The notes under the pieces were generated by a model. The model was given only the letters and a program-made list of their open reading frames with translations, was not told the DNA's origin and searched no databases. A stretch of 64,000 nucleotides of DNA from Ramazzottius varieornatus (lineage: Eukaryota; Animalia; Tardigrada). The number at the start of each line of letters is the position of its first letter. Positions within the stretch are counted from its first letter, which is position 1. This document shows, piece by piece, positions 26,490 to 55,481 of this stretch. The translations under genes were made by a program, and so were the position numbers. The stretch lies in the NCBI GenBank assembly GCA_001949185.1, contig BDGG01000004.1, positions 707,620 to 771,619 on the forward strand. Reading direction: 5' to 3'.

Positions 26490-27919
26490 TCAAGTCATCC
26501 TTCTACCTCGCCGAAAAGTGTTCAGCAACTTCTTAAACTTGCCGGTATAGGTATGCTCGAACAGACTCTTGCATTTCTTCGCTCGGGTATCTGGTCTTGT
26601 CTGGTCCATAGCCGGCTTGATGAAGTCATGAAGATATTTTTCAACAGAGGTGAACATCGCTGCTTGACCGGGTTTTCCACACCTGCAAAAACACCAAACA
26701 TACGGTGAAACGTATTTCGAGGACGGTTCGCCACACTGGTTCGGAGTAAATCCACCGGCCTAACACGTACCCCGCACTAGAAAAACTTGCGATCCCAAGG
26801 ATTCGATGTCTCCATCGTGAGTCCCCTGGCAGCAGGTACCGCTCGATTAATGGGCCACCACTGTCACCCTGTTAAAAATAAGAGGTAGGGTACTATTATG
26901 ACCATGAAAACACCATGACAGGAGCTTTTACGAAAGAGACCTGCACGGCCCGCGTACCTGACAGACGTCTGTATTACTACTGTCCGTACAAATTAGCGCA
27001 TCTGTACTATCAACGACCCCACGCCAAATGTTCTTGCACGTTTCGAGGTCAACCAGAGAGCTGCTGGCAACTTGTAGCTTTAATGACTTCTCATCGACAG
27101 TATTAACGTCGCTCGAATTCCTTTCCGATTTCTTGGATGTAAGACCCCAGCCCATTATGAGGTACTCCGTCAAAGCTGGCGTAGAGCTGTTAGCAGAGGC
27201 GTTATCTGGCAATTCAACCCTTTCAATGCTGAGTAGACTCGACAGATAGGTTACGGAGCATTTCAATCTAACGATTGCAATGTCTTTGGCCATCTGCGCG
27301 TCTGCTGGGTCGAAACCCTCGTGAGGAATGATAAGTTCTACAGCCATCTCATGATCGATGGCATAAGAGGAATTCAAATCTTTGATGCCCACCACGATCT
27401 TCAGCTCTGTGGGCGCTATCAGTTTCCTAAGAAAAGGTTACAGTATTGAAATTTCTGAATTTGCCAGAGGGACCCAGGGGGTTGCGCGAAATAGATTTCG
27501 TTCTTCACTTACGACAAACCATCTTTTTCTTGTCGGGCAAAAACACAGTGCGCCGCAGTTAGAATTAGCCGATCGGTTATCAGCGAGCCTCCGCAAATGT
27601 GGAACCATTCGTCGTTTCCTTCGTCATTCGTAAAATTCCGCTGCAGGCTCACCATCCAACCATACAAGTGTGGCGGCGCAGAGACTCCTCCTGTTTGGAA
27701 AAAACACACAGGTTATGTTTGGACGATGACGCGAACAGAACATGGAAGAACTGCGCGAGTCTGTCCCATATGGGGAAAACCTTTTACAGAGTTGAACCTA
27801 CCGATGATGAAGCTCCGTTGAGGTGCGAAGGATAGCGTGTCCGGAGCATCACGGCCCATCGAGAACGGTTCTGCAATATCCCCAACGAGTAGTAGGATGA
27901 ACCCAAAAAACTGAATCAT
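26490..27919 (-). CDS. Secreted trypsin-like (S1A) serine protease
   Basis: Signal peptide MIQFFGFILLLVG; IIG|G mature N-terminus; CGGSLI, TAAHC (His), KDIAIVRL (Asp), DVCQ|GDSGGPL (Ser, with Asp at the S1 position). About 6 exons; stop at 26490-26492. Confidence 0.92.
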
Positions 27920-28390
27920 TTCACAAGCTGACCTCATCCTTTCTGTTGTATCGTAGATCAGAAGAGACTGGAACAACATCAATGCACGATACTGGTGTGT
28001 GGGATCACAACACATACGTGCGCACTCAACCGTTGGAGAAGAACGAACAGAATGCTCTGGCAGCTAGAAGCCTGGAACTGTACCGAATTCTTGGCGGTGG
28101 TTTCCATTGCTTTGGCGTACCGCGTCCGAGACGCGGCATGACTCAAATAAATCAGCTGCCTATTCATCATAGCGTTGCTGCAAGTATCTCCGTCCGGATT
28201 CGAGAGCTATCTTCGATGCTGTTCAGAGGAATAGTTAATTTTTTGGCCCGTACTTGAATTTTGCGAGCTTGAGGGCGAACATCATCAGCTTTATGCATAC
28301 AAAAATTTGAAATCAAACTATAAAATGCCGCAACGGATAATAATCCCAAAACATGCGCATCTGTATGACACGCGTTTTCGGAGCAGTTGA

Positions 28391-31300
28391 TCAGGAGAGA
28401 GGGTTTTCCGAACTGCTACGGCTCGTACAAAGATTTCCCCGCCCTGTTTCTTCGGATCCATACAACGCTTCTCTTGCGCGATAATTCTCGCGTAGTATCT
28501 TGATTCTCAGAGCTGTTGGCACCTCAGGCAAGAGCACAGCAACGATCTTGGTCAGGACGATTATGAAGTGCTGAAACAGATTGTAATAATTATAGAGCAA
28601 AAGGTTCGTCCTCCGGCATGTATTTCTCACCTCCAGGACGATTACCAAGATTAAACGAGCAGCCAGGACGTGCCAAAATACCGTGCTCAGGGTGTAAGGA
28701 ATACTCTCTTCGGGTCCAGTTCGGAACTCTCGATACCTGCACCGTGAAAAGCCACTTTATGGTGTAACCGTATCGTGATGGCAGGTATTTTCCTCACCAG
28801 CATGAATCAGGTAGCTCGGACGAATTGAAGCTGGAGACAACAGTAGCCGGCATGGCAGACTTGGCATAATCGGTAACTGCGAAGTCGGAAAGTCGCCAGT
28901 TATTGTACCCGTGTAAAGATCCATCTTCCGAGAACGCCAACAGGTAGACCAATTCCGGAACCAAGTCTGTTGAGAACGCAATCACGAAGGCCTGTAATAA
29001 AGATTCTTCGTCGCCACATGATTGTGACGACAATATACAGTGACTGTGGTCAACTGAAACCTTACGTTCGTGATGATTGCAACTCGTGATAAGTTGCTGA
29101 GGATATCATCCCAAGCTCCGATGTTTCGCGACCACAGTGGAATTGGGCGGCGGTACAAAGTAAGGTACTTGTAAGCACTCAACCGGATTTCTATAAGGTT
29201 GGTAATGAGGGCGAACAATGGCGCTAGTGGAAAGGCCGCGACGAACATTGTGATGAATCCGAACTGCTTCACTATAGAAAAACGACAAAAAAATATCAGT
29301 ATGAAAAGAAGCAATGAGGTGATAAACGGATAAAGCGAACGAAGCTCAGGATGCCGGGATACCCATTCGGCTGTATTCCTTGAACAGACCCATGGGCGGA
29401 AATGGTAAGAGGTCGTTGTCTCTCTTCCACCGGGTTTCCACACTTTTGAGCATCGACAAGCGTCTGCGTTTTTCCCTCCGAAAGTAGCGCAGTACGGAGG
29501 GGTAAATAATCTCTTTCACAAAGGTCACTGTCGTGGTACCCAGAAACAAGACCATCAGTTGGATAGTAAGTTCCAAAAGGCAAGATCCCTTGACGCACTG
29601 AACCTGCATAACCAAACTCCAAAACCGAGGACACAGCGTAATGGGTAGCGTATCTTCTCGATACATACCCGGTCAACCGGTAAACCCAGGTGCCCTTGTG
29701 CACCCGGAAGTGCGGGAGGTACCCTGGAACAACGTATGCAAATAAATTATGATATCTTGCTCACGTATGGTGTTGGCGGGAATCGACGACTTTGCGCATT
29801 GCTTGAAAGGATTGAAGTAGACTTACCGTCCTTTGAAGAATGCCACGTAGAAGAGTGAGGTGTACGAGTTTACGAAGTCGAATGCAAAGTACTTGAAGGT
29901 TAAACTATCCTGATACTCCGTTTGAGTTCTGGGCATCTCTACAGCATGTAACCTGACCATGCATAATTTATGTACACTACGAGTAACGTGGAATATTTTG
30001 CACTTGCCTCTTTCGGTTAGCCATTTCGCGAGAAAGTAATACACCTGCAATCGGACATCCAGAATTGGGAACTGCTGAAAATTTCGATTTAGGATTCTTC
30101 GCTTACGTTACTGAGGGCGAGGATGACAATCAAGTTGAGAATTGATGCACTGAAGGCGACGATCAGTCCAGAGTTCCGAACAGCAAACGGTTGAAATGCC
30201 GGACTGGATATCATGGAAGAAAAGTTACCAGTTCCGACTGGACTTGCACTGGCTTCAATAGCCACGTTGAGAACGATTCGATAAACCACCAACGCTGGAA
30301 TCAATGGTAATCTGTGAACTTCAGTTGCGTTCGGTTGGAAGTACTGGGTACCATATACCTGTCGTAGCAGCCAGAACCAACAGCACCTACGAGCAACGTC
30401 ACAGTGCTACCACCCTTTAAAGTTGGTCGACAGTTTACCCACCATGAAGACGACAGCAACACTCGACAGAAAGCCGTATAGTGCTCGAATCCCACCCGGC
30501 ACATACGGTTCCCGAATTCCTGTAATTGGATTTTCCCGCCATTTTTCCGGCTTGATCTTTCTCATCAACTCCGGGCGGACCGGTTCCTGAAACCGAAAGC
30601 TGAATGATAGAATGCGTTTCGATGACCGACAAGCGCAGACCACAAATTTGAGAAGAGTGTACGCATACTTCGTGCTCGGTAACATCGAAGGTGTCAAAAC
30701 TCCATGACAGTAAGGTTTGCCGGCGCTTCCACAGAACGATGAAAAAGGATGACCAAAGTGCCATGAACATGGCAAATGCAAAGGTCGATGGGTTGTCCAT
30801 CAGGTAAGCCAGCTGAAACGAGACCGGTTAAGTGTCTACTAATCCGGCGCAGCAGCTTCGTGATTGGTACTTTTGTATTGACGCAGCCATCCCGTAGCCT
30901 CCAAAACGAGCAGCGCCTGCGTGACAGAAAACCAAATCCTTGCCAACTGCGTGTGTACTTTGGGTATATGTGGTTTCAATTGAGGGATCTTACTTATTGC
31001 AAATCGGACACATGACAGTGTCACCAACGGTGCTATCCGAATGGCAGACCTCGTGAACAGACACCGATGATCCCATCGAAAAAGCCCCAAAAAGCAGACA
31101 AAGAAGCCCCACCACAGCAGCTGGCAGGAGCATCAAGGTGTAAAATTCCATCCATCCAAAGTAAAATCCCATACGTTCTCCAAAGTAGTTTTTGATGTGG
31201 TCAATCGGCTGTAGTTTGTAAAACTTTCGGAACCGACCCCACTGGTCAAATAGCGCCTGAAAAATGTGCAATATACTGTGTACGTGTATCGTGAAACTGA

Positions 31301-32920
31301 TTGCGGAGTCCAGTAAAGCACCTAGGAAGAACTATTTGCATACCGCCCGACTTGTTTGATGGTCCTTAGTTGGACGCACATCATCCTCACATGAGCCGTC
31401 GTGCAGAGGGTAGACTGCTAAATATGTTTTGTTGGCCAGAAGGGATCCCATGCCTGAAGCCGAATTTCGTTAGCGGTGTACGAGTATCGCCGACACAAAC
31501 GAGATTACAACACATTGATCACGACAAAGAACGAACTTAGTTGATCATGGTGGGGATCCGTCGACTGGATACGGTTCAGAGCTTCCCATAGAAGGCGACT
31601 TCGTTGAAGTGGTGAAAAGAACTGACTCTCATCGTGCGGGATTTTGAACCTATGCCAGAATGGTAAAAACCCATGCAGTGCTAAAGACTTAGTATACAAG
31701 ATGCCCTTACAGGTTTTCCTTCTGTTTCGAGAAAGCGGTCGAAACAAAATGTGGTTTAGGCGGAAGTATGCTTGTATCGATTTGACAAATCTTCGGCAAG
31801 AGGCGCGCCATCTTTGCTTCCACGTATTTGATCTCTGATGCGTCCTGAAGAGTAAATTTGGGGCTGATTAACCTACGAGGGAAAGGTTGTAAAGTTAGCC
31901 GTCTAAGTTCGCCTGTTCTCTACTACTCAATCCCAAACTTTTGAGGATAGATCGAAAGATAAAATAATGAGCTGTCGAATGGTAATAGGCACAGTCAACA
32001 CGAGAAGTTAGAGAATCCAAGAGATCGGCAATTAAAAGAACGTTGAAATCTCATGTTAAACAGCCAAGACTGACAATCAAATAGTCAATCAAGCAATAGG
32101 CGTCACAGCCGTGGCAAACTTTACAAACCCAGTATGGGATGGCTAAGTTTACAACCTTTACCTCGTACAGACATTTGCCGAAAGTCGCGCACAGTTGAGG
32201 CACAGTGTGTACATACAGTTCGTAAGGGCATCCTCATTTTCAGAAAGTCGGCGTACCTAGGTAGAAAACCGGGGAATAGGAAACGGCATGGTGAAACGGT
32301 ACGGTGTAGCGGAGCATTCCTTACTTCGTAAGAAGATCCCAGCTAGCGTGTAACATCAGGTAGTTGTCGTACGAAGATCCGGTGCCGTCAAGTATCTAGA
32401 TACATGGTATACAGGAATACCGATAGCAGGAAACAGAGACCTGTCGTAAACAGCAGGAAGCCATACCAAGTGCAACCGGGTTTCAACCTGAATGCCTTCT
32501 TCTTCCATCAGTTCCCGGAATATTGCTCTGTTTCTCTCTCGTTCTGCCTCGGCCAAGGTTGTAGTGGTACGATAATGACTTTGGTAATGTATCACTAGAT
32601 CGACACGGCGTCGTCCATCGCGGAAGTGCAGGTCTCTGTTCGTAAAGCACACTCCACTGACGGCCTGATCAGAGTTAAAAAATATTGTCGTGACATCAAA
32701 ATGGAACAAGAAACAAGCAACCGACCCGCAAAGAGATATATTCCGGATCGCGGCCAGCAGGATCTGGATCGTCGCAGTCCATATTCCATGTGATGACTCC
32801 CGACATTCTGGCTCTCGAGATTGTTCGATGCTGGGGAAGCAATTGCGGACTTTTCGCTTAAATCTCGTTTTAACGTCCACAATACTGTACGTGGGAAATC
32901 TGACAGATGCTGTTTCTTCT
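28391..32920 (-). CDS. Anoctamin/TMEM16 family membrane protein (5' end not resolved)
   Basis: FRDGRRRVDLV, QPIDHIKNYFGERMGFYFGW, MCPIC, DNPSTFAFAMFMALW, EMPRTQTEYQDSLTFK, FVNSYTSLFYVAFFKGR, QFGFITMFVAAFPLAPLFAL, IGAW, FWHVLAARL; many short introns. Confidence 0.92.
31874..32167. mobile_element. Mariner-type MITE, family B (TACGAGG ends), in an anoctamin intron
   Basis: tacgagggaaaggttgtaaagttagcc ... ggctaagtttacaacctttacctcgta; TA at both ends. Confidence 0.75.
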
Positions 32921-33206
32921 TGAATAAAAAGTCATGACTGATAGTCTGGGCTATACCGATATCTATGAGCTTGCTATATTATGTCTCGCCGAAAGCTAAA
33001 TGCCCACGGAGGTGTCAGTTACACGTTACACCATTGTCCACACTTCTCTAAGATGTACAGTAAACACGAAAGCCGCGCAGAATACTTGTTTAGTCTCCCC
33101 AGTCACCACAAATATTTCTCTTGCCATTCAAAACGATTCCGCATGAACAACAGACTAACAGTTTGCGTATTCGAATGGTGGGTAAGCCTTTGTCGAGTAA
33201 ATAAGT

Positions 33207-33516: not shown

Positions 33517-35095
33517 TCAGCCTAAGGACCCACATCTGGCTTCCGAAGTCCAATAAGGCTGCCGAAGTTTGCGGTACCGGAATGTTAATCTAGAAAAACA
33601 CATCAGCCTGTTCGACCCTCTGAATGCATGGTGGAGTTCTTCTCTCGTGCACCAACCTCATTCTGGGATCTGTGAGATGCCGAGCGCTACAGAAGGCACC
33701 TTCACTCCATTGTCCATACACAATTTCCTTCACGGACTTAGCAGGAACCCAGCAAACGAACTCGTTTATCAGGGTGTCGGAGGTCAATCCCGAGTCGGTC
33801 ACTTGAACACGTAACGCTGCCGTCTGAAATTATCCAACCCGGATGTTAGATCTATCAAACTGAGACAAGTTCAACAATCAACTCACATCGGAACTTAGAC
33901 ACATCGACTGACTGAATTTCCGCTGTATATCGAACATGTCCTGGTAGTCGTGTGCTGCAATGAGCGAGTTCCAGACATGACCGTGACCTGGCCATTCCGC
34001 CCAAGGAGTTGTCCTACCAGAGAAACACCGAGTTATTTCTTTTACGCCGTAAAGCTGCACCTGTACGTAGCACGTCGTGGTCGATGTCCCAGTTTACCGT
34101 CTAAACACTAGGACTTACGTGTCCAGTTCGTCAGCATATATGCGAGGCGAACACTTCCAGAGAAAGTGACACCACCTGCCATCCGATCGTAAACTTCCAG
34201 GGTTTTCGAACCGCAGCAGCTCGACCTCGAGTAACACGGAGAGATCGCGGGGCGTGGTAATTTCAACCGCTGGAGGCATGGTCTTTATTGTCGAGGTTGA
34301 CGTCGTTCGTGTAGTGGTGGAAGTGGTAGCAGGTGCTGTCGAGGTCGTAGCAGAGGTGGTGGTAGAGGTGGTCGCTGTGGTCGTGGAAGTTGCAGGTGCC
34401 ATCGTAGAGGGCGCTGTAGAGGGTGTCTCATACAACGTCGACGGCATGGCTGAGCTGTTCAGCAAGACATTTAAGGATATTTCGCCTAGGTTTGTCTCAT
34501 TGACACCGCTGAGTAAGTCTATTAAAGGCGAGATTTCGGATCTCAGCTGTGGATATCTCGTCAGGTTTAGACCGGTAATGTTATTAACTTGAAATGCAGA
34601 CTTTGACTCGGTGGTGTTGAAGGTACTTGTACTGTTGTCGGATAACGAGCTGGACAGCAGATCCTGATTGAAGCTGGTGAAGTTGAATTCTTGAAATTCA
34701 ATTTCCTCCTCGGTGCCTCCCAAATCCTTACTGGAAGACACGCGGAAGAAAGTGCTAGGATCAAGCAGGATCGACAGGTCCTCCGGCACTTCGCGAAAGT
34801 AGATCTCGCCTGGCTGACGAGGAAAACTGACAAACAAGATGTTCATGTTAGACAGCAGTTGCTGTTGTTCGATCGGGTCACCATTGATGTCATGAGGATA
34901 GAAGGTGGGGCCGTAAGCCATGTGGGTGAAATTTACGCGTTCTTCTTCGGTCAAGGGTAGTGCTGAAACATTGAAATGCTGGAGCAGACTTCGAAATGAA
35001 AACTTTTCACTGACAACTCCGCGAAACAGGAAGATAGCACAACAAGCGAATAGGGTCATTTTGTTCAGAGACAGAACTGAAGCCAAGGAACCCAT
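33517..35095 (-). CDS. Secreted protein: long Ser/Thr-rich N-terminal region plus a C-terminal AMNP/g12777-like C2-type domain (tardigrade Mn-peroxidase family-like)
   Basis: Exons 35095-34119, 34013-33887, 33823-~33657, ~33589-33517. Spliced domain: VLLEVELLRFENPGSLRSDGRWCHFLWKCSPRIYADELDTTTPWAEWPG...MCLSSDTAALRVQVTDSGLTSDTLINEFVC...WSEGAFCSA...RMRLTFRYRKL...RCG. The NPGS, C-x5-C, TP...WPG and LRV.V.D....D.I..F.C pattern matches my recollection of the family. Confidence 0.65.
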
Positions 35096-35744
35096 TGTGA
35101 GAGGGAACTTCACGTCGCAGCCGAATATTCTTTACTGGCCAACGATTTTCAAGCTCATGCGTCCATCACGTTTTCGAACCTGCGAAGCGCCCTGCCTTCG
35201 AACGAGGAAACTATGGAAACCGGTTGGACGTGATCAGGAAGAAAAAGCAGACCAACTTGTAGGAGGACCGCAAGTGTCCGGAACAGACAACTTTTTCACG
35301 ACGACAGCAATTAAAATCAAGACGAAGTGGAACGCTCATTAGCTTTCCCCTTCCGACTTTCCAACAAGTCGGTCTCTGGCTTGCAGCGGATTTCCCGTGA
35401 GTAGCATGCCTCTCCACCAGGGGGCGTAAGTGCAGTCGTAGTACTGTGCTGTCCGTACCGCCTGGCAAACGGAAATGCCACTGCACTCGTAGTCCGAGGT
35501 ATTAGCTCGAAACAGGCATGCGGCCACAGCTCGAGCATTTTGTTCAGTCGGAGAGTTTAGCCCTGATGCCGAAATGATGCCTGTAAGTCGAAGCAACCAT
35601 GAAATGTCAAAGGTAGCGTGACAGGGAGCCGGAACGCATGAAGTGCCATCAGACCCTTGCATACTGTACCATCGGAAAAGTCCCAATTATGGGACACGCT
35701 CGTTTTGCCATGACATGCCCTCTTTTCCATCTTTACTAGCGGTG

Positions 35745-36452
35745 TCAGATAAACGATACTAGTCTCTTCCGAACACTCGTCCTGACATTCAGCGATGTGG
35801 TTCGCCAGAAAGATACACTGAAAAAATTCACGCTTCGGTATACAGGGGTTGCCTGCAAGAATTCTGGAAAATATCCTGATAGAGACTGTACCTTACCTGG
35901 ATGATACCGCCGATAACTTCGGTCAATGTGGTTTCGTCATGGTTCCGATTTGGTGAGATGGTGGTCCGGAAAGCAAATGGGACAGGCTGAAATGGCTGTG
36001 TGGTGGTCTTAAGCTGTAAGATCGTTTCTGGTGGCGCAGGCCCACACTTTTTCAAGTTCCGTATGGGTGACGCGCCAGCTGGAGCACAGAGATTCCAGCC
36101 AACATCCAACCAGTTATTGTCGGCAATTCGCGGGTTGAAAGTCATCCATCGGTCCACCGACGTCGAGGATGCCTCAGCCAACATGGACAGGCAGTCCCCT
36201 TCCCGTATTTGAATTCGATATGGACTATCTGGTGCGCACTCATCACGCACTTCCGGCTCCTCGCCGATCCAAATGCTGCGTTGAGAAACAGCCTGAAATA
36301 GCTGACTCCTTAGTTTTTAGATCGTTGTTTCGGATCGAAGGATCGTTGGTTTAGAAAGCTTTTCGAGTTGCGGAAGCCAGTGGGTATAAAACAGCGCTCA
36401 CCTGTTGCAATCCTAATGACACTAACAAGAATAACCTGAATTCTGACCGCAT
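35745..36452 (-). CDS. Small secreted LysM-domain protein (3' exon uncertain)
   Basis: Exon 36452-36402 gives MRSEFRLFLLVSLGLQQ and splices to exon 36292-35897 (AVSQ..., completing a signal peptide). LysM: C....YRIQIREGDCLSMLAEASSTSVDRWMTFNPRIADNNWLDVGWNLCAP, then a Pro/Thr linker. Confidence 0.75.
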
Positions 36453-36850
36453 AATGGGAAACCCACAGGCATGCCAATTCCGGGAAGTGGTTCTTCCATC
36501 ACGCTGTAGCCGGATGCATCAGCAGAACACGGAATAGCGATTATTCTGTTCAGTTCCAAAGAAATAGTGTTCTTCGAAATATCAAGTGTTACATACGGTC
36601 TCAAAGAGAATTGCACGGAAGGACATTATCTCACGACTTGCCCGAGGTGCAACGAGCTTTGCACAAGCGAAAAGTTTCAGAGAGCATAAAAAGGCCTCCA
36701 GGCATTTGCAGCGTTCTTGCTTCAGAAGTGAGGATCGAAGGATCGTTGTTTTCGAGTTTTTGGAGACAAAATTGGCGCGAAATGTACAGTGTGCGGCGGG
36801 TTCAGTGGTACGAATCAAACTATACAGGCACGCACCGTGAAAGGATTCGA

Positions 36851-39150
36851 TCAACAGATCAAATTAACAAAGGCAAAGAGGAAACCTATAAGTATTGCTT
36901 TCGATGGCTCGTTTCTCCCGAGCGAACTGCTGGTGTGTACCGGGTTATAACTGGCTGAGCTCGGTGGCGAGGGCCTGGTGGAAGGTACCGGTATGTCAAA
37001 TGTGGGGTTCGGTGTTTTTGACATGGCCTTCGTCGATGGACTGATCGCCTTTCTAATTGCAGCAAGCAAGGGAAACTTCGGACCGCAGGCTCCTTGTCTG
37101 TCGTCCAGTCCAATATGCCAAATGAACACTCCCTTCATATTCTGACTTTCCGCCCATTTTACCTGCAAAGTTGTAAAACCGAGGTCTCCAAGAAAACTTT
37201 GGGAAGCACTACCGAACAGACCTTGATAGAAATACTGTCGTCATCGTCGTAGCTAACCCACTGATTGCCGGAGTAGGCGTAGGACGTGCTGCTTGCTGGA
37301 TCAGTCTTGCGTGTCCATCCGGTTTTCAAATTTATACAGATTTCCGTGTATGACAATGTTCCGTTGTCGTATGTTAAGAACCCACCCACTCCGGGCCCAA
37401 TAGCTTCGTGTCCCATGCCAACATCTCTGGTTGTATTGCCAGTGTCGTTCGTCAAAGTCCAGGTTCGGCCGTAGAATGGAATACCTAATGACAACTCGGC
37501 TGGCGTAATGCCCGCGTTAATCCAGTCAGTTACAGACTTTCTCTGCAAAGAACACGGAATGCAAAAAAACAAAGAAGAAAAAAGCGGGCGCAAATTCTTT
37601 CATTGGCTCGGTTTGGGAATGTCCTTAATCAAAATGGAATCCACTGACCACGTCTGGGAACCCAGCATTTACTGCTGTTTTCTGAACCGTGGAACCCCAG
37701 TTGCCTTTGTAGTCATAAGTCAGTACGTTAACACCGTCCACGTACCTAAAACCGCCGATGATCAACAGGAACTCTACAGAGATGGATCAAGCCGCTTAAG
37801 CTTGTTTTTTGATTTGGGAATCCTTACTTTGCGATTTCTTTCGGAAGGTAGCCAAGTCGTACTGTCTGGGTTACGGTGGTCGTCAACTTTAATCGCTCGC
37901 GCTGGGTTTTGTTTGCCTCGAGTTCAAACGCTTCCCGGAGACTCTGGCGAGGGAAGTAAGAACTGGGGATCGTATTGATAACTGAGACACGGAGCGTGGA
38001 CATTGTCCACTAACCTGAAGCAGTAACGCGTGGTCTCGCGCACCGGCTGGTTCAGGGAACTGCCAGTCGATGTTCACGCCGTCCAGACTCCACCTTCGAA
38101 GAGTCGTGACCACCGCTGAAGCAAACTTTATACGGCTCGCTGGGTTACTCGATGTGCTGGCAAATTCTTTCCCACTACCCCACCCTCCAACACCCAGAAG
38201 AATTTCCAGATCTGGTTGTGCCTCCTTCAGATCATTCAGCTGCGCGAAGTGCTGACGATATTTGCTACCGTTGGTAGGAGCGGGTACGCCATCTTCTATC
38301 TTGAAGAAAGCGTAGATAATGACGTCACATGCCTTGGTCGGCGCAATGTCACTGATGCGAAATGGATTGTTTCCTTCATTGCTTAATGTCCACTCCGGAA
38401 GATAGCACTGGACTCGGAGATCACCTACGGTACGTGCAGCCCGTTACAGCAAAGTTATCCCGTTTTGTAGAAAATTCTGTGGTCAGTCGCGGGTCGAAAT
38501 TACCAGTTGAAACACTTTTGTTTCTGTCATTCTAGCTTTCTAGTTTTATATGAGCACAAAAAGGATCGTTTAGATGAGACCTTTCGAATAATTCAAAACA
38601 AAGTTTCACCCGTGTTTTTCGAAATTTGCTGAAACATGCACGCCAAGTGACCACGGAGAACCTCTAGTTTCTCATTCGAAAATTCACATCCCCACAACGT
38701 TTTCCATTGTTTCCAAGAAGTGTTTCTGTAAACGGGAAAAATTTCATTTTGCCACCGAAAAATGTACATCAGAGCGTTCTAGCTTTCGAACGAAAAATAC
38801 CTTTTCGATAACACAAGCAGAAATCAAAAAACGTTTTGCAACCAAATTTCAAAACGAAGCTCTCGAACTAGTTTGCACCTCCGACTCGTAAATTAACGTT
38901 TAACAGTTAGAAGAGAGGCTGAATTTTATGAAGCTAACTGAAATGGTGCCAAAAGTACTGATTTAGATTTTTGAGAGAAAGTTACGAGAGCAGCGGGGAC
39001 GACTTTGCTCTAAATAACGGGCTGTATATGGCAAAGATAGCCAACTTGCAACAAATTTGCAACTGATCGTAAATAGTCCGTACCTGCTGAAGTCCAGCGA
39101 GAAAATTCAGCTAACAGTAGAGATAACCACGCAAAACTGCTCATATCCAT
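36851..39150 (-). CDS. GH18 chitinase-like protein, predicted catalytically inactive, with a C-terminal GPI-anchor-like signal
   Basis: Signal-peptide exon 39150-39084. CYLPEW, CDVIIYAF, LLGVGGW, DGVNIDWQFP, LTYDYKGNW, LGIPFYGRTW, LSYTEIC, NQWVSYDD..SI, GVFIWHIGLDD. Ser/Pro/Thr stalk and hydrophobic end AILIGFLFAFVNLIC*. Exon phases appear consistent. Confidence 0.9.
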
Positions 39151-39227
39151 GTGGGCCTACAGGTGAGATGAGAAACCTCCGTAACTCAATCTTGATGATC
39201 CGTTTATTTGGAATACTGGACGATCCG

Positions 39228-39255
39228 TGACCACTAGATTCTGACCACTAGATTC
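39228..39255. repeat. Perfect 14 bp tandem duplication (TGACCACTAGATTC x2) in the divergent promoter region
   Basis: Read directly at 39228-39241 and 39242-39255. Confidence 0.9.
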
Positions 39256-39612
39256 CAGAAGACGGCGAGTTCATGCGGCTTTAAGCGCAGACCCGCAGGC
39301 ACAGGTTTTATGGGGATCTCTAAACACGTCTGACAGAAAAGTTTTAGGGTAAACAAGTCCACTCGTTTCGTCCGTCACGGGTTATGGATTTCGGGTAAAC
39401 TGCGTGAGTTTTTAGAAGACACAACGTGATCGTACAAGAAGATAAATGTCCGTAGGCCAGCCTCTGCAGTACCTCAAGGCAATGCGCGTTTTGAACTGAT
39501 CATAATAACGATCGAGTGAATTGTCTGGCCCGCGGACTTTCTCTTAGTCGTCATCTCAAAACATGAATTACCAAGATCGTGGAACAGAATCTTACTTTGC
39601 CTTGAAGTCGCC

Positions 39613-42953
<3,341 letters not shown>

Positions 42954-43446
42954 TCTCATCAGCCGACGCTCTTGCTTGATTGTTTAAAATTTTATTGTTT
43001 GTTGTCCCTTTTTCTCCTGACACTCTTGCCTCTTTCTCCAATTTTGTTCGTACATGCTTGAGCCTGGCCAGCATTCCAATAAGGGTGTAATTGTATAATG
43101 TATTACCTCCTGCATGCACCGGTGCCAAGTGCAAACCTTTGCGGGCAGAGTCCTTCCAGGTACCACCTTAAACAGCCTGTATTCTCAGTGCGCAATAGAT
43201 CCAAACTCACTTTCGCAATTGTTCAGCATTATTTTTCTCGCTAGTTCTCGTGAGGGTTGTATTTGAATGCCGCCCATGAAATCGACGTGGCGCGCCCAGC
43301 CCGCCAAAATAAGTGGATACTCTGAGTCTCGCACTCGCGGCGCTGAATTGCTAGCGACCGAGCAACCAGTGTTTTGAACCTCACGTAATTATTCCCCTCC
43401 AAGCAGCTACAATTAGGAACGAATTTCCATTTGCGAGTTACTGCTG

Positions 43447-43601
43447 TACGAGGGCGAAGTTGCTAAGTTAGCCGGCTGGTGCCGCAGTTGTGAAGTTAAC
43501 CACCGAATATCAGGCGTACGCCATTAAAAGGCTTACGCTTCACGAGATGAGGCTAACTTTTACCACCTCGGCCTGGCTAGCTTTGCAACTTTGCCCTTGT
43601 A
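43447..43601. mobile_element. Mariner-type MITE, family B
   Basis: tacgagggcgaagttgctaagttagcc ... ggctagctttgcaactttgcccttgta; TA-bounded; inverted copy of 33207-33367. Confidence 0.8.
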
Positions 43602-43748
43602 TATCAGTTCTTCCTCACGTACGAGGTAATCAAGAATGGAAAAGTAAAAACAAAGATAATACAGTGCAACTAAGTCCAACTTAGAAAATGTGTTTTGAAA
43701 TCAACATCATATGGCTGATACTCAGCAAAACAAGTTTGTCACAGAACT

Positions 43749-46700
43749 TCAACATTCATTAACGTCTTGGGGGTCGACACACTGATTTCGGTGCTGATTA
43801 TACCGCCACTGAATGCCATTGTGGGGAAGACACATGAACTCAAACAAATTATACTGTTTGGGTCCCACTTTGACGCACAGGTAAAACTTCGAGCATGAGA
43901 CGTCCCTTGCATTCCTGAAGTACCCTTCCGATCGGCACTTGAAGCTCATCCCAGTCGTGATGTTGTTCAACTGGCCGGACACCGTGTTGAAGTTCAGGAT
44001 CAGTGCAGAGGGCGTGGTAGTGGCCATGGGTCCGATTAGTGTTTGGTCGAAGGATGTCGGCGGACTTGGCGTGACCCAGTCCGACATTTGAGCGTAGAGC
44101 TTGTTGAACGTGTTGCGGTAGGACGTGAGCGAGAGCTGAACACTGGTTCTGTCGTTGTAGGTGTCGTGCTGCGACGACACTTCCAGTGACCCCTTACCGG
44201 GTACCTTGATGGCCACAGCCTTGTTACCTATCCAGCTGCTGACAGTTGGGCGAGGCTCTTTGTTTCTCCATGGATTCAACATGGTACTTGGGAGTGGCAG
44301 CGACATGGTGACGCCACCGGGTCTTCGGGTGGATTGCGTCCGTGTGGAGGACCCGGTGGTGAAGGACGACGTGGCCGTGGTTGACGGGGAGTTCAGAGAT
44401 GTGCTGCTGGCAGACACATTTGTACTCGAAGTGGTGCTTGTGACCGTGGTGGTTGGGTTCGTATAGTCTTTTTCAGGTCGGCAAGGGTCGTTGGAAGGTG
44501 GAGCCACACATTGGCCGCTGGTCACATTCAGGTAGAGCGTTTCGCAATATATCTGGGAGAAAAACGAACAGCAAATCATGAGAGAATATTTCAGTCATGA
44601 ACATCAACTACGGTAAAAAAATGCAGCCCCATTCTTGCGGAATTTTGATTAGCAGCTGTCTTCACCAGACTACTGTGCTCGTGCATGAGTTATGAACCAA
44701 TAAACTACCCGAACATTTGCACCAGTAGTCAACCATTTTCTGCACGGTAGTATCTAAATGACTGACAACCATAGAGAAATATCACTGTGGTTCCATGATC
44801 ATGAGCCGTGCCCGTATGAACTGTATAATTCTGTACGCGACGTCGATCGGGTCATTCTTATTATCGATCATTCAATGCAAGGTAAACAAATTTCGTTTCT
44901 CTTTTTTCCATTAAATCAGTCTGATCTTTGATAAGTGGTGCCATCATGGATATATTAATTTGGCACGCAAAATTGATTTGGTCGGACCCTGCGTAAGTCT
45001 GCTTACCTCTTGCAAACGGAAGCGTCCTTTCTCGACCTCAAGACAGCTATAATAATAGCCACACGTCTGAAGTCGGTAAACCTGTTGGGTGGTGCAAACC
45101 AGTGGAGCAGCGCCGTCCTGCACACCGTCACTGCCCGTCTGCCACACTTTGGGCAGCACCACTTGTGGAGCATGACTTGACACGGTGCTGGCAGTCTTGA
45201 TGGGTGTTGTGGTGGTGGTGCCCGCCGAAGGTTGCATCAGTTCGGGCAGGATGTCCAGCCCAAGACCCGACTGACAAGGGTTACTGGCAGAGGCGGGCGC
45301 CATGCAAGCGTGCGAGATGGTGTCAAATACAAATGGTCCGTCACACCGGTAGTGGAGCATGACGAAACTGTTGGGTTCCGGAGTCAGCTGAAGGCATCTT
45401 GAAAGTCGAAAAAGTCTATATTATCGACCTTCCGTATATATTATCATTCACAGTTATTCAAACATATTTTTCCATATTTACGGCGTATGATTCGAGCCAG
45501 TAACAATTACTCGATTTTCACCAATTTAGTACGTTTCACTATGCTTACCGGTAGAAGCGTTGGCAGGTTTCATCGCTGGGATACAAGAAGTATCCCGATG
45601 AGAAGCACACAGGCTGGGCCTTTTGTGCGAACTTTGGAACGTCCGGCTTTTGTACTCCCGGCTTGACGCTGATAGGCGCAGGTGTTGGGGTCGTCAGAGG
45701 GATCGATTTTATTTCAATGAAATTCGCACTGTTGTCATCGGTAGTACTAGAGTCGGTTGTGGCTCGTTCGGTGGCCGCCAACTGCAAATTCTCTGTTACC
45801 TCAGGGCTGAGATTCGTTGTCTTCGTTTCTGTTTCAGGGCTCGACGGTAGGCTGGTTGAGCTGGAGCTCAATACTTCGTCAAGAGAATCAGGTAGGGTCC
45901 AAACATCCGGACTTTGAGTAGCGATTGGTAACAGGAAGGGTGTGAACGACTCTTCTTCGGTCGAGTCATCCACCGAATTCGGCGTTGAAGCGCTTATTGC
46001 GTGATTTTGTGGTACTGAAGGAGTGTTTTGATTCTTAAGATCGCTGGAGGAGATAAACGTCCCAGCTTGTGCATCAAAGACGGTTCCATCGATACCACAG
46101 TTGATTTCGGCATCGTACTGGCACGTGCCATTGTGAAACGCTGTATGTGGCGGACACTGGAACCGAAACAGCAGGAAGGCTTCCATCCAAACGTACTTTT
46201 CGCATTTGAAAAACACACACGGGTTCGCCGTCGAGAACACTCCCACTTGCCCACATCTGAAATCTTCTCCGTCCGTTACCAATACCCCAGTGGCTGTTAA
46301 GTACGTCATAGGTTTGATAATGGGCTGGAAATTGAACGTTGATTGACTGTTTTCGCCGTTGTCACCGTTGTTTGTTTGTAGCGAGACGCCGACAGTGTGA
46401 GAGAATCCAGTAGACGTCGTGGTGACGCTCGGAGTTCGCGTTGTAGGCGCCACGCTTTCACGTTCTCGACCATACGGCAACGTGAACACTCGTACCACGT
46501 CTTCCAGCACGGTAGGGGATGGAGTCGTGAAGGATGGTTGGGACGGCGATGGGGTCATCCAGATTGTAGCAAGTGTACCAGGTGGCACAATGCTCGGTGC
46601 TGATGTCGCCGCAGCATATTTGTACGGAAGAGAGTTGTCGAGGTTATCCAGAAGGGTCATGTTGCATACTGAGGTCTGGCTCGTAGCCCACGTACATAGT

Positions 46701-47721
46701 TTCTTTTCTTCATCGAAGAATAGACCCGTTGGGCAGGAGAACTGTTCGATCTTGAGCGTGGTGGCGATCGTTGAGCATCGAATGAACCGACGACAGTTGA
46801 TCGGGCTTCGGAATAGCAGAGTCGTAGAGGCGGAAGCTTTGTTCTGAAAGCCGTCTCGACAGCGGGAAACTTGCCAACGCCGTAGAGAGTCGGACAGAAG
46901 GGTTGAAGAGATTCCTTCTTGAGTAGTGTTGAGATCGGTGGCGGAGACCCGCCACGGTGAGATAACGGTGGCGTCCAATGATGCTGCAGCTTCCATACTT
47001 TCTTCGCCCAAAGCTTTTACGCAGGCTTTGACCGTTGGCTCGTACACTAGACCGGCATCACACGTGAACAAATAAACCTGAAACCAAGTAACATAATCCA
47101 CGTCGCTACACTCTTTCCAAAATCATTCTATCTATTGTTCTAAACTGTTAGTATTATAGTTTGAGTTCACCACCCTGGTCGAGAAGCGGGTGGCTCGAAA
47201 TTGTGAATACCAAATCTACAACTGTCGCAGAGGATCACAGAATTTTGAAAGGCGTTGTGTTTGGGAGGCTGGCAAACAGTCTCGGAACGATCATTACCTC
47301 AAGTAGCGCACGTTTCCAGTCAAAAACACAAAAAATTGCGCCACTTGAGGAAACGATAATGCTGAGATAGTTTGCCGGCGTCCGGTTTACTGTCAAGTTT
47401 TACCATGTAATTGCTTTGGGACTGTAAAGCCACGCAGCGGAAGAACTTGGTGTTGTTGGTGGGATGTGGGAAGTACCCTGACACCGAGCATGTTAATCCC
47501 GATAATTCGGAAACGTAGGAAGCCGGTCGTCGATCTCCACTGGGGGTTCTCCGCTTGATCCTCCACAGCTTTTTGAAACTGTCACTTTCCGGGAATCTGT
47601 CGTCCTTACTAATGGTCCGGACATCCTGTGTGCTTAACACCATGGGTCTTCCCGGAACACTGCCGTGTGCATTAGCCACGAAACCCAACAGGAGTGTAAT
47701 AATGAAAAACAGCCACAACAT
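43749..47721 (-). CDS. Secreted peritrophin/CPAP-like protein with six CBM14 (ChtBD2) domains and Ser/Thr mucin linkers
   Basis: Exons 47721-47404, 47077-45549, 45397-45007, 44552-43749. Signal peptide MLWLFFIITLLLGFVANA. Repeats such as CSVSGYFPHP...KFFRC...FTCDAGLVY, FSCPTGLFFDEEKKLCTW and CRSEGYFRN...CSKFYLC. Confidence 0.88.
47261..47383. mobile_element. MITE-like palindromic repeat, family A (copy 5)
   Basis: ggcaaac...cctcaagtagcgcacgtttcc ... aaattgcgccacttgaggaaacgat...gtttgcc; in intron 1 of the CBM14 gene. Confidence 0.7.
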
Positions 47722-48385: not shown

Positions 48386-51300
48386 TCAAGGGATGGTGGG
48401 GGACGATCGTGGAGTTCTCTGAGTACTTGGAACACTGATAAAAGAGTTGTACCCGCTACCGGACAGGTTCATCTGAACACATGGGCGTCCCTTTGAATGC
48501 GTGGAACCACAGAGGAAGCACTTCACACCACCAGGTTGTGTTTGACTGAAACGTGGTGGTAATGACTGTGCTTTGCTCTGACCATTTCGATTGTAGTCAA
48601 TCAACGGCAAGGAAGCCGTATGACTAGCCGACCGCAAGCTGCTGCTGGATCGAGGGACCGCCGATCGGGGACCACTAGACCGCATAGATCGAGGAGCTGT
48701 ATAACGCCGACCGTTCGCCCTCAGGGAAGCGTTGTTACTATCCCCCGGTAGCTGATGGTGGTAAATACTACGTCGAAATGGACCTTGAGTTATATTGGGC
48801 ACACTTCGGCGTAAGGCAGCAGCTTCACGGCGACTTTCGGAGTACGTAAGACATTTTAGGCAATGACGATCCAACAGAGACCAAAAGTCGTTCTGTAATA
48901 GAAAAAGCCATTCGATTCACAGACCAGACTTAAAAAATCAAAGACGAAGTCCTGAAGTTACCTTGAAGTTCTTGTTGACCACGACGTAAATTATCTGTAA
49001 GTTCAGAACAGGGAAATGTGGAGTATTGATGCTTTTTCTCCAAATTGTTCATCTCTGTTGGATTTGGTTGCAAAGTTAAAACTCTTGTGTGGGACTTACT
49101 ATATTGATGGCAACAGTGAGCATAGATACGAAGTGGCAGCATACAAACAGCATGTGATAGTATTTGGGCGGGAGGTTCTTAAGAAAGGCGGAGAAGTCGT
49201 GCAGGAGGAAAAAAATGTGAAGTGGCAGCCATAGTAATCCGAAGGACAGTACCATCAGCGCCAACATCTTGATAACCTATGGAAGCACAAGTGATCATCA
49301 AAGTTCGGCTGGCTTTCTGTGTTGACTAGGATCACGTATGTGTCAGGACCCGGAGTAAGTCATCAGGACTGTATCCGCCTCAACACGCCAAACTAATCAT
49401 GTGGTGGACATGTAGACCGCTTTTGCTTACATATGCGTCAGCCGAGCGGAAGTGAACCTTCTTTCGTCACGTGAGCAGGCTTACGTATCAGCAAACTCAG
49501 GCGTACCTGAAGTCTGGTATGATCGGGTTGTTTTTGGAATTGGATACCCATGACAGCAAATGATTTGACAAAATGAAGGGGTGTTAGAGCGATGACAGCA
49601 CATACCAATCTGGTCTACGGATGTTCGCGGGTCTCGGGTTGCTTTTCGGAGCGGGAAAAGAACACTGTTTCTGTAACCGGAGACCAGAACTACACAGAAC
49701 CGCGTCAAAACATTCTTCGTGTTTTTTTTTGGCAAGCGTCAAGAATTTCCATGTGCATCTTTCTGGACAAGTTACCGCTCACCCGCACCATGCATGAACA
49801 AGAACGCCGGTAACTGATACCAACCGGCTTGCCAAAATTAATTTTGTCTTGGTTTGGGTGAGCGCTAGTTCTCGCAATAAATCCGACCGTACTCTCATTA
49901 AACCGTTGAGCAACCCAGATGTTTTTGCCCGTGTCAGACTAAGAGACTATTAGCCCAATTGACAATAAACCCGTGAGCGATCGTAGGTGTAACTTAGCGA
50001 TTACAGGCCGGTCTTCTGTTCGGAGCAGAGCCCAGGGGCCGGGTACTCGTAACTCTAATCCTTAGATTCCGTTACCGACAAATTAACTTGTTGATCATTC
50101 AACCTACCTTCCGCTTCGATTGTAGCTGATGCTTGTCTCTAGTCTCCGCCGCTTCACCCGGTGTCGTTCTCTCCCATAATTTGCGCCCAATGTACGAGTA
50201 GGCGCAACCGATGCAGAAGAGCGGTATGACATAGTCCACCGAAAAGACCCAAATTGTATAGTATCTGCTGTACAACGAGGTCTGTCGGTCCTCTACATCC
50301 GTTCTATCCAGATCATCGGGCCAGGTCTCCAAGCACAGGTAGATATTGGAAGCGTTACCATCCTCGGAATGTTCAGACGTAATCTGTACTTGACTAACAA
50401 ACAGCTGCACGCTAGCTTGCAGCAAAGACCAGAGCCAGATGAGGCAGAGGATGATCAAGAGCTGATTTGAAGTATTTGTGGCCCGAAGGAGCTGGCGGAA
50501 AGGTCGGCAGATACTGCGTAATCGATCGATGGATATGAAGGCTTGAGTGTAGATACTGGCGGAAACTGAAATATAGGATTCAGGTTGCCAGAAGAGCTAG
50601 ATTGAACTGCGTTATCGGCACCGTCCGGTTCATACCTGAGGTGTGCTGCATGAAAGACACGGCGGGACACAGAAAGTGCGGGTAGATCCATTTTCCCAGG
50701 AGCACTACAAAAGACAAAAAGACGGCTAACCAAACCACATCATACTGCGTTGATCGACAATGAGGCAACCGGAAGTACAGACGAGAACGCTGCAGATTTT
50801 CCATCTGAAAATGACCAGACCAGCAACGCTGAAGTCGTAAGCAACTCTTGCCAACGACCTATTCAACTGTGGATACAGGGTTCGTCAACCCATCAGTATA
50901 ATTACAAAGCTTTTCAGAGGCGTTCAGTGATTTTCCATCACTCTGACATTCTGTGAAAGATCGTAGTAAAATGGCGCGGATATGGTTCTGTACGTTCTTA
51001 CGTCAAGTCCTTTTTCGATAGTCCAAGTAAAGTACACACCGGAAGACAGAAAAGCCTTACCTTGGGTAGAAGTGAAAGGCATACAAAAAAGCGCCATGAT
51101 CAAGTCAGATATGGCCAAGTTTATCAAGAACGGCGCCAACTCCGTCCGCGACTTCCGCCCGTAGGAAAACACATAGATGACCACAATGTTTCCCGCCACC
51201 GAGAAGAAAATGTTGAGTCCATACAGGAACAACAATCCGACCTGGACCTCATAGGGCAACGTATACTGGTCCAGTTCCGCACTACCGGCAAAATCACTGT

Positions 51301-51391
51301 AAAAAGTCGAATCATTGCCCAGAGGAAAGTCCACATAGTTCAAGTTCACTTCACCCTCCTCGAAAGGCGACGAGTTCCCCACGCTGGACAT
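48386..51391 (-). CDS. Class A neuropeptide GPCR (tachykinin/leucokinin/RYamide/NPY-receptor-like)
   Basis: AGNIVVI, FLINLAISDLIMALFCMPFT, W.YPHFLCP, SIDRY, C.ETWP, DYVIPLF, LWERTTPGE...KRKV|IKML, CWLP-like LLWLPLH, 33 nt micro-exon IIYVVVNKNFK (48994-48962), long Ser/Arg-rich tail. Confidence 0.88.
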
Positions 51392-53387: not shown

Positions 53388-55481
53388 TTACGGATGAGGT
53401 TTCTTCCCGCTTGAAACCGGAGCGTTGTGCGCACTGCTTTCCTCCTTTCGCCGCTTGCCGCCACTTCCGCCACTGAGGTTCCGTATTTGAGGAAACGTCG
53501 GCATCAAGTCGGGACTACAGGCTGCCAACAGAAACCTCATGAAGAACGGTCTAGTCGGAATCGAATACCAAGAAACCGTACGAAATATCAAATGATTATG
53601 AAATCTCAGCTCATATACGGTGAAAATTTTGTTTGGTGCTGGAAACGTGTCAAAAGCTGAATTACCAACATACAAGTCACTCAACCACCATCTTTTTGAT
53701 ACGAAAGCCCAACGAGGTATCGACTTGGGCTCATGGACAGAAGACCTTTTGCACCAAGGCGAACCTCCACTTACGTAGCGGATGTTCCTTGAAGTAAGAG
53801 CTCTTCAAGGCTTCCCTAGCTGTCGACCTCTTGTCGGGATCGTAGGTGAACAGAGCGTTCAAAAGGTGCAATCCGGAAGGACTCAACCAGCGGAACGTAT
53901 GCTTGAGGTTGTTGTAAGGCTGCTCTCGACCAATATGGAAAGACTTGACACGGGGTAGGTCAGAAAACCCCGGCCATAGTGCTTCCGTCGGGTTGCCCAG
54001 TAGATCCACTATCAGGCTCAACTGAAACGGAAAGAAAGCTGAGTTATCACACGTCAGCATTTATGTGAAAATTTTTAGTTTTTGTCTGCCGTGTGCTACA
54101 TATTCAAAGCCGTGCCTGATGAATCTCCGTCTTTCCCGGAAGCAGCGGTTTGTACAGCAGAAGCTCACCGAAAATGCACCCAAGCGACCACATATCGACC
54201 GCGGTGGTTTGCTTCGGACTTTCCAAAAGAATCTCGGGCGAACGATACCTGTAACAATAGCGTCCGTAGCATTCAGACCGGTGAGTACAACTGCTATTCG
54301 TATTACTGTATCTTACGATGGCGGATGAGCCGGGACACGTCATTTGGAGCCACAACGGCCATGAAAGAATGCTGTACATTCTGTACTAGTACGCATTTTT
54401 CTGCGGTCTCTTCGAGACGTCAAGTTGTTCGAAGCTTGATATTATGGTATACTAACCATAAAGTGACTACTCCGGGCGTCATACTCGCTTCTTCGTGTTC
54501 GTTCTCCGTGGTGTCATCCCCTTTTCTTCTTTTGGTGTCGGGAGACCGAGACGGAAATTCAGCAAGAGGTCTGGCCAGCCCAAAATCCGCCACCTTCAGA
54601 CAACCTCTGTCCGTCAGCAGGAGGTTCGACACTTTGAGATCCCGATGAATGATGTAGTGGGAATGCATGTACTGGACACCCTGCAAGGTCTGCTGGAAGA
54701 CACACTTGATCTGCGATTCCGAGAAGAGTGGCGGTGCAGATCCAGATAGATGCTGGGAGGATTCGCCCGTCTGGCCGAACTTGTCTAGCAATGTGGCAAG
54801 ATCTTGTTCGCAATACTCCATCACGAGGAATATGTCATGGAGCCGATGTCGGCCTACCACCACTTCGTGAAGACGGACGATGTTCGGATGGCTTAACCGG
54901 AATAAGCACATAATTTCACGGAGACCACTGATGGGTATACCTGGAATGCAAAAATCTCAACAGAATTCTACAACGACATAGCACAGCATGTTGAATGTGT
55001 TGGCTGATCCGTCTATGCATGCTAACGGTGACGGCTACTAACCCGACTTCTCGGTCTCCATTCGCATCTTCTTCAACGCCACCACCTCTCCCGATTTGGT
55101 ATCGCGAGCTCTGTAGACCACTCCATAGGTTCCTTCGCCCACGCGATTCAGCTTCTCGAATTCAGATACGCATCGACATGCCCCCAGCTGTAACCGGAAA
55201 CCCCAACAAAGTAAGTGACGAACAGTGCAATCAACAATCAACGGAGAACACAATTAAGCAAGTCACAGCAATGTCGAACAAACGGATAACACATAACTGG
55301 CTGCTTATTCTTCACACATTCAACTCAGATGCTGGTTACTTACCGGTGCGGACTGAATCAGGCGACGAACGCTGCTTTTCGGAGCATCACTCGGAACTGG
55401 TGTTTTGAAGCCGGACACTTCAGTTATATTATCCGCGGAGTGGGCATCCTTCGTCGCTAGCGACGACTTCTCCTCGTCCAT
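53388..55481 (-). CDS. CDK10: Cyclin-dependent kinase 10
   Basis: [38 protein letters not shown] (PISSLRE-type helix), [59 protein letters not shown]. Confidence 0.93.

Follow-up and report, generated by a model that had tools for sequence, protein, structure and literature searches.

A receptor tyrosine kinase with a dead-enzyme ectodomain in a chitin-matrix gene neighbourhood of Ramazzottius varieornatus

Locus and gene order

The analysed DNA comprised positions 707620 to 771619 of contig C4 in the 55.8-Mb assembly of the tardigrade Ramazzottius varieornatus. Positions without a contig name refer to this window of 64,000 nucleotides (nt). Four consecutive genes were located along it in the order LysM-like secreted protein (minus strand), GH18 chitinase-like protein (minus strand), receptor tyrosine kinase (RTK, plus strand) and CBM14 mucin-like protein (minus strand). 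A first-pass annotation, made from the letters of the window, had described these as four consecutive genes for extracellular proteins with glycan-type folds, and all genes and domains were present on the strands given there. Its coordinates were essentially right, except that the LysM gene extends past the left edge at 35745, to 35560 or 35339. No further sizeable open reading frame (ORF) lies between the four genes in the ORF list of the window.

Gene identities were taken from deposited proteins. The LysM gene is RvY_08609 and the RTK gene RvY_08611; the ORF at 39613-41544 (644 amino acids, aa) is identical to residues 1-644 of the latter (100%). Numbering by position, the GH18 gene is presumably RvY_08610 and the CBM14 gene RvY_08612. 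Full-text searches found no paper on RvY_08609 to RvY_08612, and searches of the supplements of PMC9145152 and PMC5531438 gave no entry for them.

The receptor tyrosine kinase RvY_08611

The receptor gene and its parts were placed as follows.

39613-42953, plus strand: RvY_08611 receptor tyrosine kinase (P0001, 975 aa, five exons)
39670-40347, plus strand: N-domain with GH16 beta-jelly-roll fold, catalytically degenerate (residues ~20-245)
40336-41229, plus strand: middle domain with gluzincin metallopeptidase fold, without HExxH (residues ~242-539)
41287-41358, plus strand: transmembrane (TM) helix
41613-42863, plus strand: tyrosine kinase domain (exons 2-5, with kinase insert)

RvY_08611 has a signal peptide, one TM helix and a tyrosine kinase domain with the motifs HRDxAARN, DFG and PxxWxxPE. 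The kinase is intact: it retains PVRWMSPE, the G-loop and beta3 Lys, and it scored 255 bits against Pfam PK_Tyr. The closest kinases were KIT, FLT3, VEGFR and FGFR at 35-39% identity.

No Pfam match, GH16 included, was obtained within the N-domain. When the whole ectodomain was modelled with AlphaFold2 (AF2), the N-domain reached a predicted local distance difference test (pLDDT) score below 50. It was then modelled alone together with paralogues, which gave a pLDDT of 82.4 and a predicted template modelling score (pTM) of 0.83. The matches listed by Foldseek for this model were GH16 laminarinases, lichenases and carrageenases (E 1e-10 to 2e-8, TM 0.5-0.68, probability 1.0). In addition, the N-domain aligned to the second GH16-like domain of the paralogue RvY_06820 (BLASTP E 3e-7). 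Pfam GH16 scores among the paralogues were 82.6 bits for the first domain of RvY_06820 and 32 bits for RvY_11618. In RvY_08611 the sequence Y-I-T-F-E-L, assigned by alignment position, takes the place of the ExDxxE strand of GH16 enzymes. Of the three motif residues only the final Glu survives by this alignment; the nucleophile Glu and the Asp have been substituted, so that the motif of an active GH16 enzyme is lost. The degenerate GH16-like ectodomain of the first-pass annotation was thus borne out at the level of the fold, with catalytic Glu and Asp gone.

The insect GNBP/betaGRP proteins likewise use a GH16 fold minus its catalytic residues as a recognition module. GNBPs are soluble proteins that set off protease cascades, whereas the GH16 fold of RvY_08611 is fused to a tyrosine kinase. 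Unlike GNBP/betaGRP, RvY_08611 has no CBM39-type N-terminal glucan-binding domain by Pfam.

The middle domain was modelled with a pLDDT of about 90. Pfam gave no peptidase match in it; all top Foldseek matches were zinc peptidases. In VIA-align, 5ev7 was matched with Z 12.4 (root-mean-square deviation, rmsd, 4.7, 259 residues), followed by AM0627 (12.2), BT4244 (11.9) and members of M1, M30 and M61 (about 11). These values (Z 11-12.4, rmsd 4-5 Å across 210-260 residues) place the domain in the gluzincin fold. Since several gluzincin families share such values, no subfamily was assigned. The domain accordingly shares its fold with the M60-like O-glycopeptidases BT4244, AM0627 and ZmpB and with M1, M30 and M61; it differs from these gluzincins in lacking HExxH and in lying between a GH16 fold and a TM tyrosine kinase. 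The disarmed-enzyme ectodomain claimed for this receptor at first pass therefore holds a second enzyme fold besides the GH16 fold.

Outside Ramazzottius, all named homologues of the middle domain that were looked up were bacterial (Bacteroidota, Actinomycetota and Polyangia). In about 200 bacterial homologues the domain is fused to lectin-type modules (discoidin/CBM32, CBM6/35, ricin) and FN3. The motif HExx(H/N)xxE was present in 30 of 30 bacterial homologues and is lost in every tardigrade copy. Contamination was excluded, since one 1.9-kb exon holds the middle domain together with the GH16 fold and the TM helix, and the 4.7-Mb contig around it has spliced kinase exons as well. A bacterial origin of the middle domain is suggested, with horizontal transfer as the simplest reading. 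For the TPS gene of R. varieornatus, the greatest similarity is reported to be with TPS of Bacteroidetes species, Chitinophaga among them (PMC5531438).

Literature searches found no RTK with a glycoside-hydrolase or metallopeptidase fold as ectodomain. RvY_08611 is an RTK with an undescribed dead-enzyme ectodomain.

Paralogues and relatives of RvY_08611

At least nine loci of the R. varieornatus genome carry ectodomain domains of this RTK family. Three-part copies (GH16 fold, middle domain and kinase) number at least five, namely RvY_08611, a pair on contig C19 and a pair on C7. RTKs with the GH16 fold only are two genes on C3 and also RvY_11618. The paralogues RvY_06820, RvY_11618, RvY_12496 and RvY_18527 share the kinase class and the GH16-like N-domain with RvY_08611, and the middle domain was also found at four paralogous RTK loci.

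At two loci, C4:271457-272290 and C10:62466-63128, the middle domain stands alone, with no GH16 or kinase match nearby. In the copy on C4 the motif reads NEIGVIVEH, closer in appearance to the bacterial one, and this copy may stand nearer to the originally acquired gene. On C5 (1746811-1750577) a tandem array of GH16-like N-domains without a kinase was seen; an in-frame TAA occurs in one of these copies, which could be a pseudogene or a paralogue that is only secreted.

A fragment of 257 aa from an ENA assembly (P0153) is 62% identical to the N-domain of RvY_08611, and probably represents the orthologue from a related species. In Hypsibius exemplaris, protein searches found no protein with the ectodomain of RvY_08611, and only a VEGFR-like kinase was matched. 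A metagenome scan with the ectodomain gave no relative. By these searches, the RvY_08611 family appears so far to be almost confined to Ramazzottius.

The GH18 chitinase-like gene

36851-39150, minus strand: GH18 chitinase-like gene (six exons and stop codon)
39150-39084, 38425-38015, 37943-37828, 37745-~37652, 37542-37213, 37162-36854, minus strand: GH18 exons
38060-38086, minus strand: active-site motif LDGVNIDWQ (DGVNIDWQ in place of DxxDxDxE)
36854-36931, minus strand: C-terminus resembling a glycosylphosphatidylinositol (GPI) signal (small residues, polar spacer, 15-residue hydrophobic end; read by eye)
39151-39612, no strand: intergenic region (462 bp) separating the divergent ATG codons of the GH18 and RTK genes

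The GH18 and RTK genes had been described as head-to-head, and this arrangement was confirmed. Pfam GH18 (PF00704) matched a single exon with 72.7 bits, and the genome scan gave two exon matches of 89.3 and 70.1 bits. The signal peptide is encoded by the exon at 39150-39084, whose donor CAG|GTACGG is compatible in phase. Since canonical in-frame splice sites are available at all six exons, the gene looks intact and is no obvious pseudogene.

In the active-site motif the second Asp is changed to Asn and the catalytic Glu to Gln, and the DxxDxDxE motif of active chitinases, with its catalytic Glu, is therefore absent. The catalytic Glu is retained at 11 other GH18 loci of the genome, and the copy in the window is the only loss among the 12 examined. 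The first-pass reading of a GH18 protein without catalytic Glu and with a GPI-like tail agrees with the motif and with the C-terminal layout; the latter, read by eye, suggests GPI anchoring.

In the chi-lectins, represented by the Drosophila IDGFs and mammalian YKL-40/CHI3L1, the GH18 fold and the motifs of the sugar cleft are likewise kept and the catalytic Glu is replaced. IDGFs and YKL-40 are GH18 proteins of the chi-lectin type, and in IDGFs the catalytic Glu is changed to Gln. The protein in the window is, judged by its residues, of the chi-lectin type, with putative glycan binding. It differs from chi-lectins in the additional change of the second Asp to Asn, and in its Ser/Thr/Pro stalk with a GPI-like tail, whereas chi-lectins are soluble.

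The LysM-like protein RvY_08609

35339-36452, minus strand: RvY_08609, small secreted LysM-like protein (splice model equal to deposited protein P0315)
36080-36211, minus strand: LysM-like domain (P0315 residues 45-88; Pfam score below cut-off, protein-atlas features, UniRef name)
36248-36292, minus strand: N-terminal peptide after the signal peptide (residues 18-32), the sole part predicted to touch the RTK

The reading frame of RvY_08609 starts with ATG at 36452. Exon 1 encodes the signal peptide and ends with the donor CAG|GTGAGC, and exon 2 starts at 36292. Signal cleavage would fall after residue 20, as placed by eye with the -3/-1 rule. Isoform 2 (P0315, 235 aa) ends near 35560, and isoform 1 (P0316, 278 aa) at 35339. 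The latter has a Cys- and aromatic-rich tail of 90 residues (35339-35686, minus strand) that is absent from isoform 2 and to which no domain was assigned.

Pfam LysM (PF01476) scored 16.8-18 bits, under its cut-off of 20.9, and spanned profile positions 2-43 of 43. The genome-wide LysM profile scan (E<=0.01) gave no match at RvY_08609. UniRef labels the protein 'LysM domain-containing protein', and in the protein atlas (score 0.91, 179 features in common) the best ten named matches were all LysM clusters. RvY_08609 is thus probably a divergent single-LysM protein; the secreted LysM protein proposed before has its signal peptide, and the evidence for LysM, though weak, is consistent.

On C8 (1550528-1557692) a GH18 match with two LysM matches adjoins a GH18 and CBM14 pair, with no kinase. 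By comparison with the GH18 and LysM combination on C8, RvY_08609 was also considered as a further exon of the GH18 gene that would encode its C-terminus. This was rejected and the two genes were kept separate, because a stop codon follows the hydrophobic tail in the GH18 frame, and RvY_08609 begins with an ATG and signal peptide of its own.

The CBM14 gene and the flanks

43749-47721, minus strand: CBM14 (peritrophin-A) mucin-like gene (signal peptide, six Cys modules, Ser/Thr-rich linkers)
46655-46873, minus strand: CBM14 module 2 (41.2 bits; the sole module above the Pfam cut-off; C4:754292-754435 in the genome scan)
27000-33000, 50927-51391 and 54423-54911, minus strand: flanking genes (anoctamin, rhodopsin-type G protein-coupled receptor (GPCR) and Ser/Thr kinase)

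Three of the six Cys modules are interrupted by introns. Against the Pfam CBM14 (PF01607) cut-off of 22.1 bits, module 6 scored 20.1 bits and the halves of the intron-split module 1 scored 18.4 and 18.6; modules 3, 4 and 5 were recognised by cysteine spacing only. Six Cys-patterned modules were therefore seen, as claimed at first pass, and Pfam support is limited to modules 1, 2 and 6. The signal peptide, six-cysteine modules and Ser/Thr-rich linkers are shared with peritrophins, CPAP/obstructor CBM14 proteins and insect intestinal mucins. A difference from peritrophins is that one module stands above the Pfam cut-off and three are recognised by cysteine spacing only.

The series of consecutive genes for secreted proteins is extended to five by an ORF at 34115-35113 (minus strand), just upstream of the LysM gene in window coordinates. 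It encodes a signal-like N-terminus together with an extended mucin-like stretch rich in Thr, Ser, Ala and Pro, with a weak Pfam Mucin match of 19 bits. The outer flanks, with anoctamin, the rhodopsin-type GPCR and the Ser/Thr protein kinase, are unrelated to the extracellular cluster.

Linkage of the four genes

Genome-wide profile scans listed 15 GH18 loci, 80 CBM14 matches and 16 LysM matches. In these scans the closest GH18, CBM14 or LysM match to any other locus with RTK-family domains was more than 140 kb away. Searches by tblastn with the GH18, LysM and CBM14 exons of the window found nothing within 15-20 kb of the paralogous RTK-family loci. Hence the linkage is unique to RvY_08611, the only one among the paralogous RTKs that adjoins GH18, LysM and CBM14 genes.

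One reading takes the four genes as a functional module, in which chitin or wall glycans would be captured for the RTK by the GPI-type dead GH18 together with the LysM protein, and perhaps by the CBM14 protein as well, as an animal analogue of CEBiP/CERK1. It is favoured by the run of four consecutive genes, all with glycan-type folds, by the 462-bp divergent region common to GH18 and RTK, and by the singular loss of the catalytic Glu in this GH18. Against it stands the linkage, which is repeated at no paralogous locus. Furthermore, a CBM14 match was found at 12 kb or less from 5 of the 15 GH18 loci (in four cases immediately adjacent), and the GH18 locus on C8 has its two LysM matches right beside it. 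Since matches to GH18, CBM14 and LysM cluster at several other loci without kinases, a cluster of chitin-type genes needs no receptor as its explanation. Taken together with the complex model below, the full module is considered unlikely.

A second reading is that the neighbourhood arose by chance: the RTK would have been moved among chitin-matrix genes by rearrangement, and no neighbour would bind or regulate it. The other loci with RTK-family domains, none with a chitin-type neighbour, are in its favour, as is the fast turnover of local synteny in tardigrades, which is reported as very low between the two species sequenced (PMC5531438).

Complex model of RvY_08609 and the RTK ectodomain

As suggested in the first-pass annotation, a complex of the LysM protein with the RTK ectodomain was modelled. 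The input was RTK ectodomain residues 20-550 and RvY_08609 residues 18-235, with three controls. The median ipSAE of the LysM-RTK pair was 0.67, and the best of the three controls, among them RvY_08609 with an unrelated protein of 507 residues, reached 0.00. Among solved complexes 51 of 78 attain the mark, and among mismatched pairs 2 of 108. The runs shared at least 48% of contacts; 125 contacts were counted, 65 of them confident.

On the side of RvY_08609 the contact is formed by residues 18-32, best defined at 21-29, and neither by the LysM domain nor through a glycan. The modelled peptide spans the concave sheet of the GH16 fold, which is the former active-site cleft. Contacts on the RTK side include Y105, W111, Y127, T129, E131, F133, Y141 and H145, all eight identical in P0153. 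The peptide S-I-W-I-G-E of RvY_08609 (within 36248-36292, minus strand) recalls, in its alternating pattern, the catalytic strand E-I-D-I-x-E of GH16 enzymes, maybe by coincidence; the stretch of the RTK noted alongside it is 39991-40008 (plus strand).

The earlier proposal that hydrolase-dead binders feed a tyrosine kinase gains partial support, in that the LysM-RTK pair passes the complex model; the four genes as a unit are unsupported. The pass itself speaks for the full module, and against it speaks that the predicted contact is made by a peptide instead of the LysM domain or a glycan.

The chance reading explains the pass as a false positive, with a floppy hydrophobic peptide set in an open cleft. 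This would fit the pLDDT of the partner (about 50), the contact by only 13-15 residues of RvY_08609, an interface that is not significantly conserved, and the rate at which blind neighbour pairs pass the same test (7 of 44). It is opposed by the three controls, which were all 0.00, so that the peptide is not generically sticky in the model. It is also opposed by the rarity of passes among unrelated pairs (about 2 of 108 to 126), and by the position of the contacts exactly on the aromatic-lined strands of the former active site. On balance, a chance neighbourhood is regarded as a serious possibility, though one somewhat below an even chance.

Interpretation

The reading preferred here, held tentatively and with slightly less than even confidence, is that RvY_08611 is a dead-enzyme RTK in a chitin-matrix gene neighbourhood, with RvY_08609 as candidate ligand or co-receptor and with GH18 and CBM14 independent of the kinase. 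RvY_08611 would act as a ligand-gated kinase that binds through the former GH16 cleft, which is lined with aromatic residues, and maybe through the pseudo-peptidase domain as well. The N-terminal peptide of mature RvY_08609 would lie across the former GH16 active-site cleft. GH18 and CBM14 would act in the chitin matrix and share with the kinase at most the tissue context and, in the case of GH18, also the divergent promoter region.

Several points weigh against this reading. The test was calibrated for interfaces other than peptide and disordered ones, 7 of 44 blind neighbour pairs pass it, and a pass denotes confidence of the model, not binding. The complex model is a single in-silico test, in which the pLDDT of RvY_08609 was only 50-52. 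Conservation at the interface (25 of 34 positions) did not differ significantly from the rest of the domain (108 of 175, p=0.24), as judged from one orthologue fragment, P0153. No homologue of the RvY_08609 protein was detected, a word-based search giving only the protein itself, and the pairing therefore has no co-evolution evidence. Finally, four or five consecutive glycan-type extracellular genes are unlikely under random gene order, which could favour the fuller module. Counting in the small share that falls to the full four-gene module, RvY_08609 as a true partner of RvY_08611 is a possibility that stands a little below an even chance.

A more far-reaching version is that the LysM protein docks its N-terminal peptide in the dead GH16 cleft and that wall or cuticle glycans switch this contact, in a receptor built in part from a transferred bacterial metallopeptidase domain. 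This is improbable on present evidence. LysM or GH18 might then bind chitin, or beta-glucan might compete for the cleft, and the system would match plant LysM/CERK1 perception by convergence; such a scheme is similarly doubtful.

With the plant system of CEBiP (a GPI-anchored LysM protein) and CERK1, the locus has in common a probable LysM protein, a putatively GPI-anchored non-catalytic binder, a single-pass receptor kinase and the proposed logic of binders that feed a kinase. The likeness does not go beyond this outline. The kinase of CEBiP/CERK1 is a Ser/Thr kinase of the RLK/Pelle type, whereas RvY_08611 has a PDGFR/VEGFR/FGFR-type tyrosine kinase of metazoans. The ectodomain of CERK1 has LysM and that of RvY_08611 has none, so that the receptor is not of the CEBiP/CERK1 type. 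The GPI-type protein is a LysM protein in CEBiP and a GH18 protein in the tardigrade. The contact predicted in the tardigrade, in turn, is a peptide in a cleft, and chitin binding there is putative.

In the RvY_08611 family a GNBP-like dead GH16 module is joined directly to a tyrosine kinase. The middle domain, whose only other relatives are bacterial, makes it likely that horizontal transfer fed receptor innovation in an animal. Should the LysM partner be false, the locus would still show that adjacency of glycan-type genes in the R. varieornatus genome is no evidence of a pathway. If it is true, RvY_08609 and RvY_08611 would be a tardigrade orphan ligand-receptor pair tied to the biology of chitin and the extracellular matrix.

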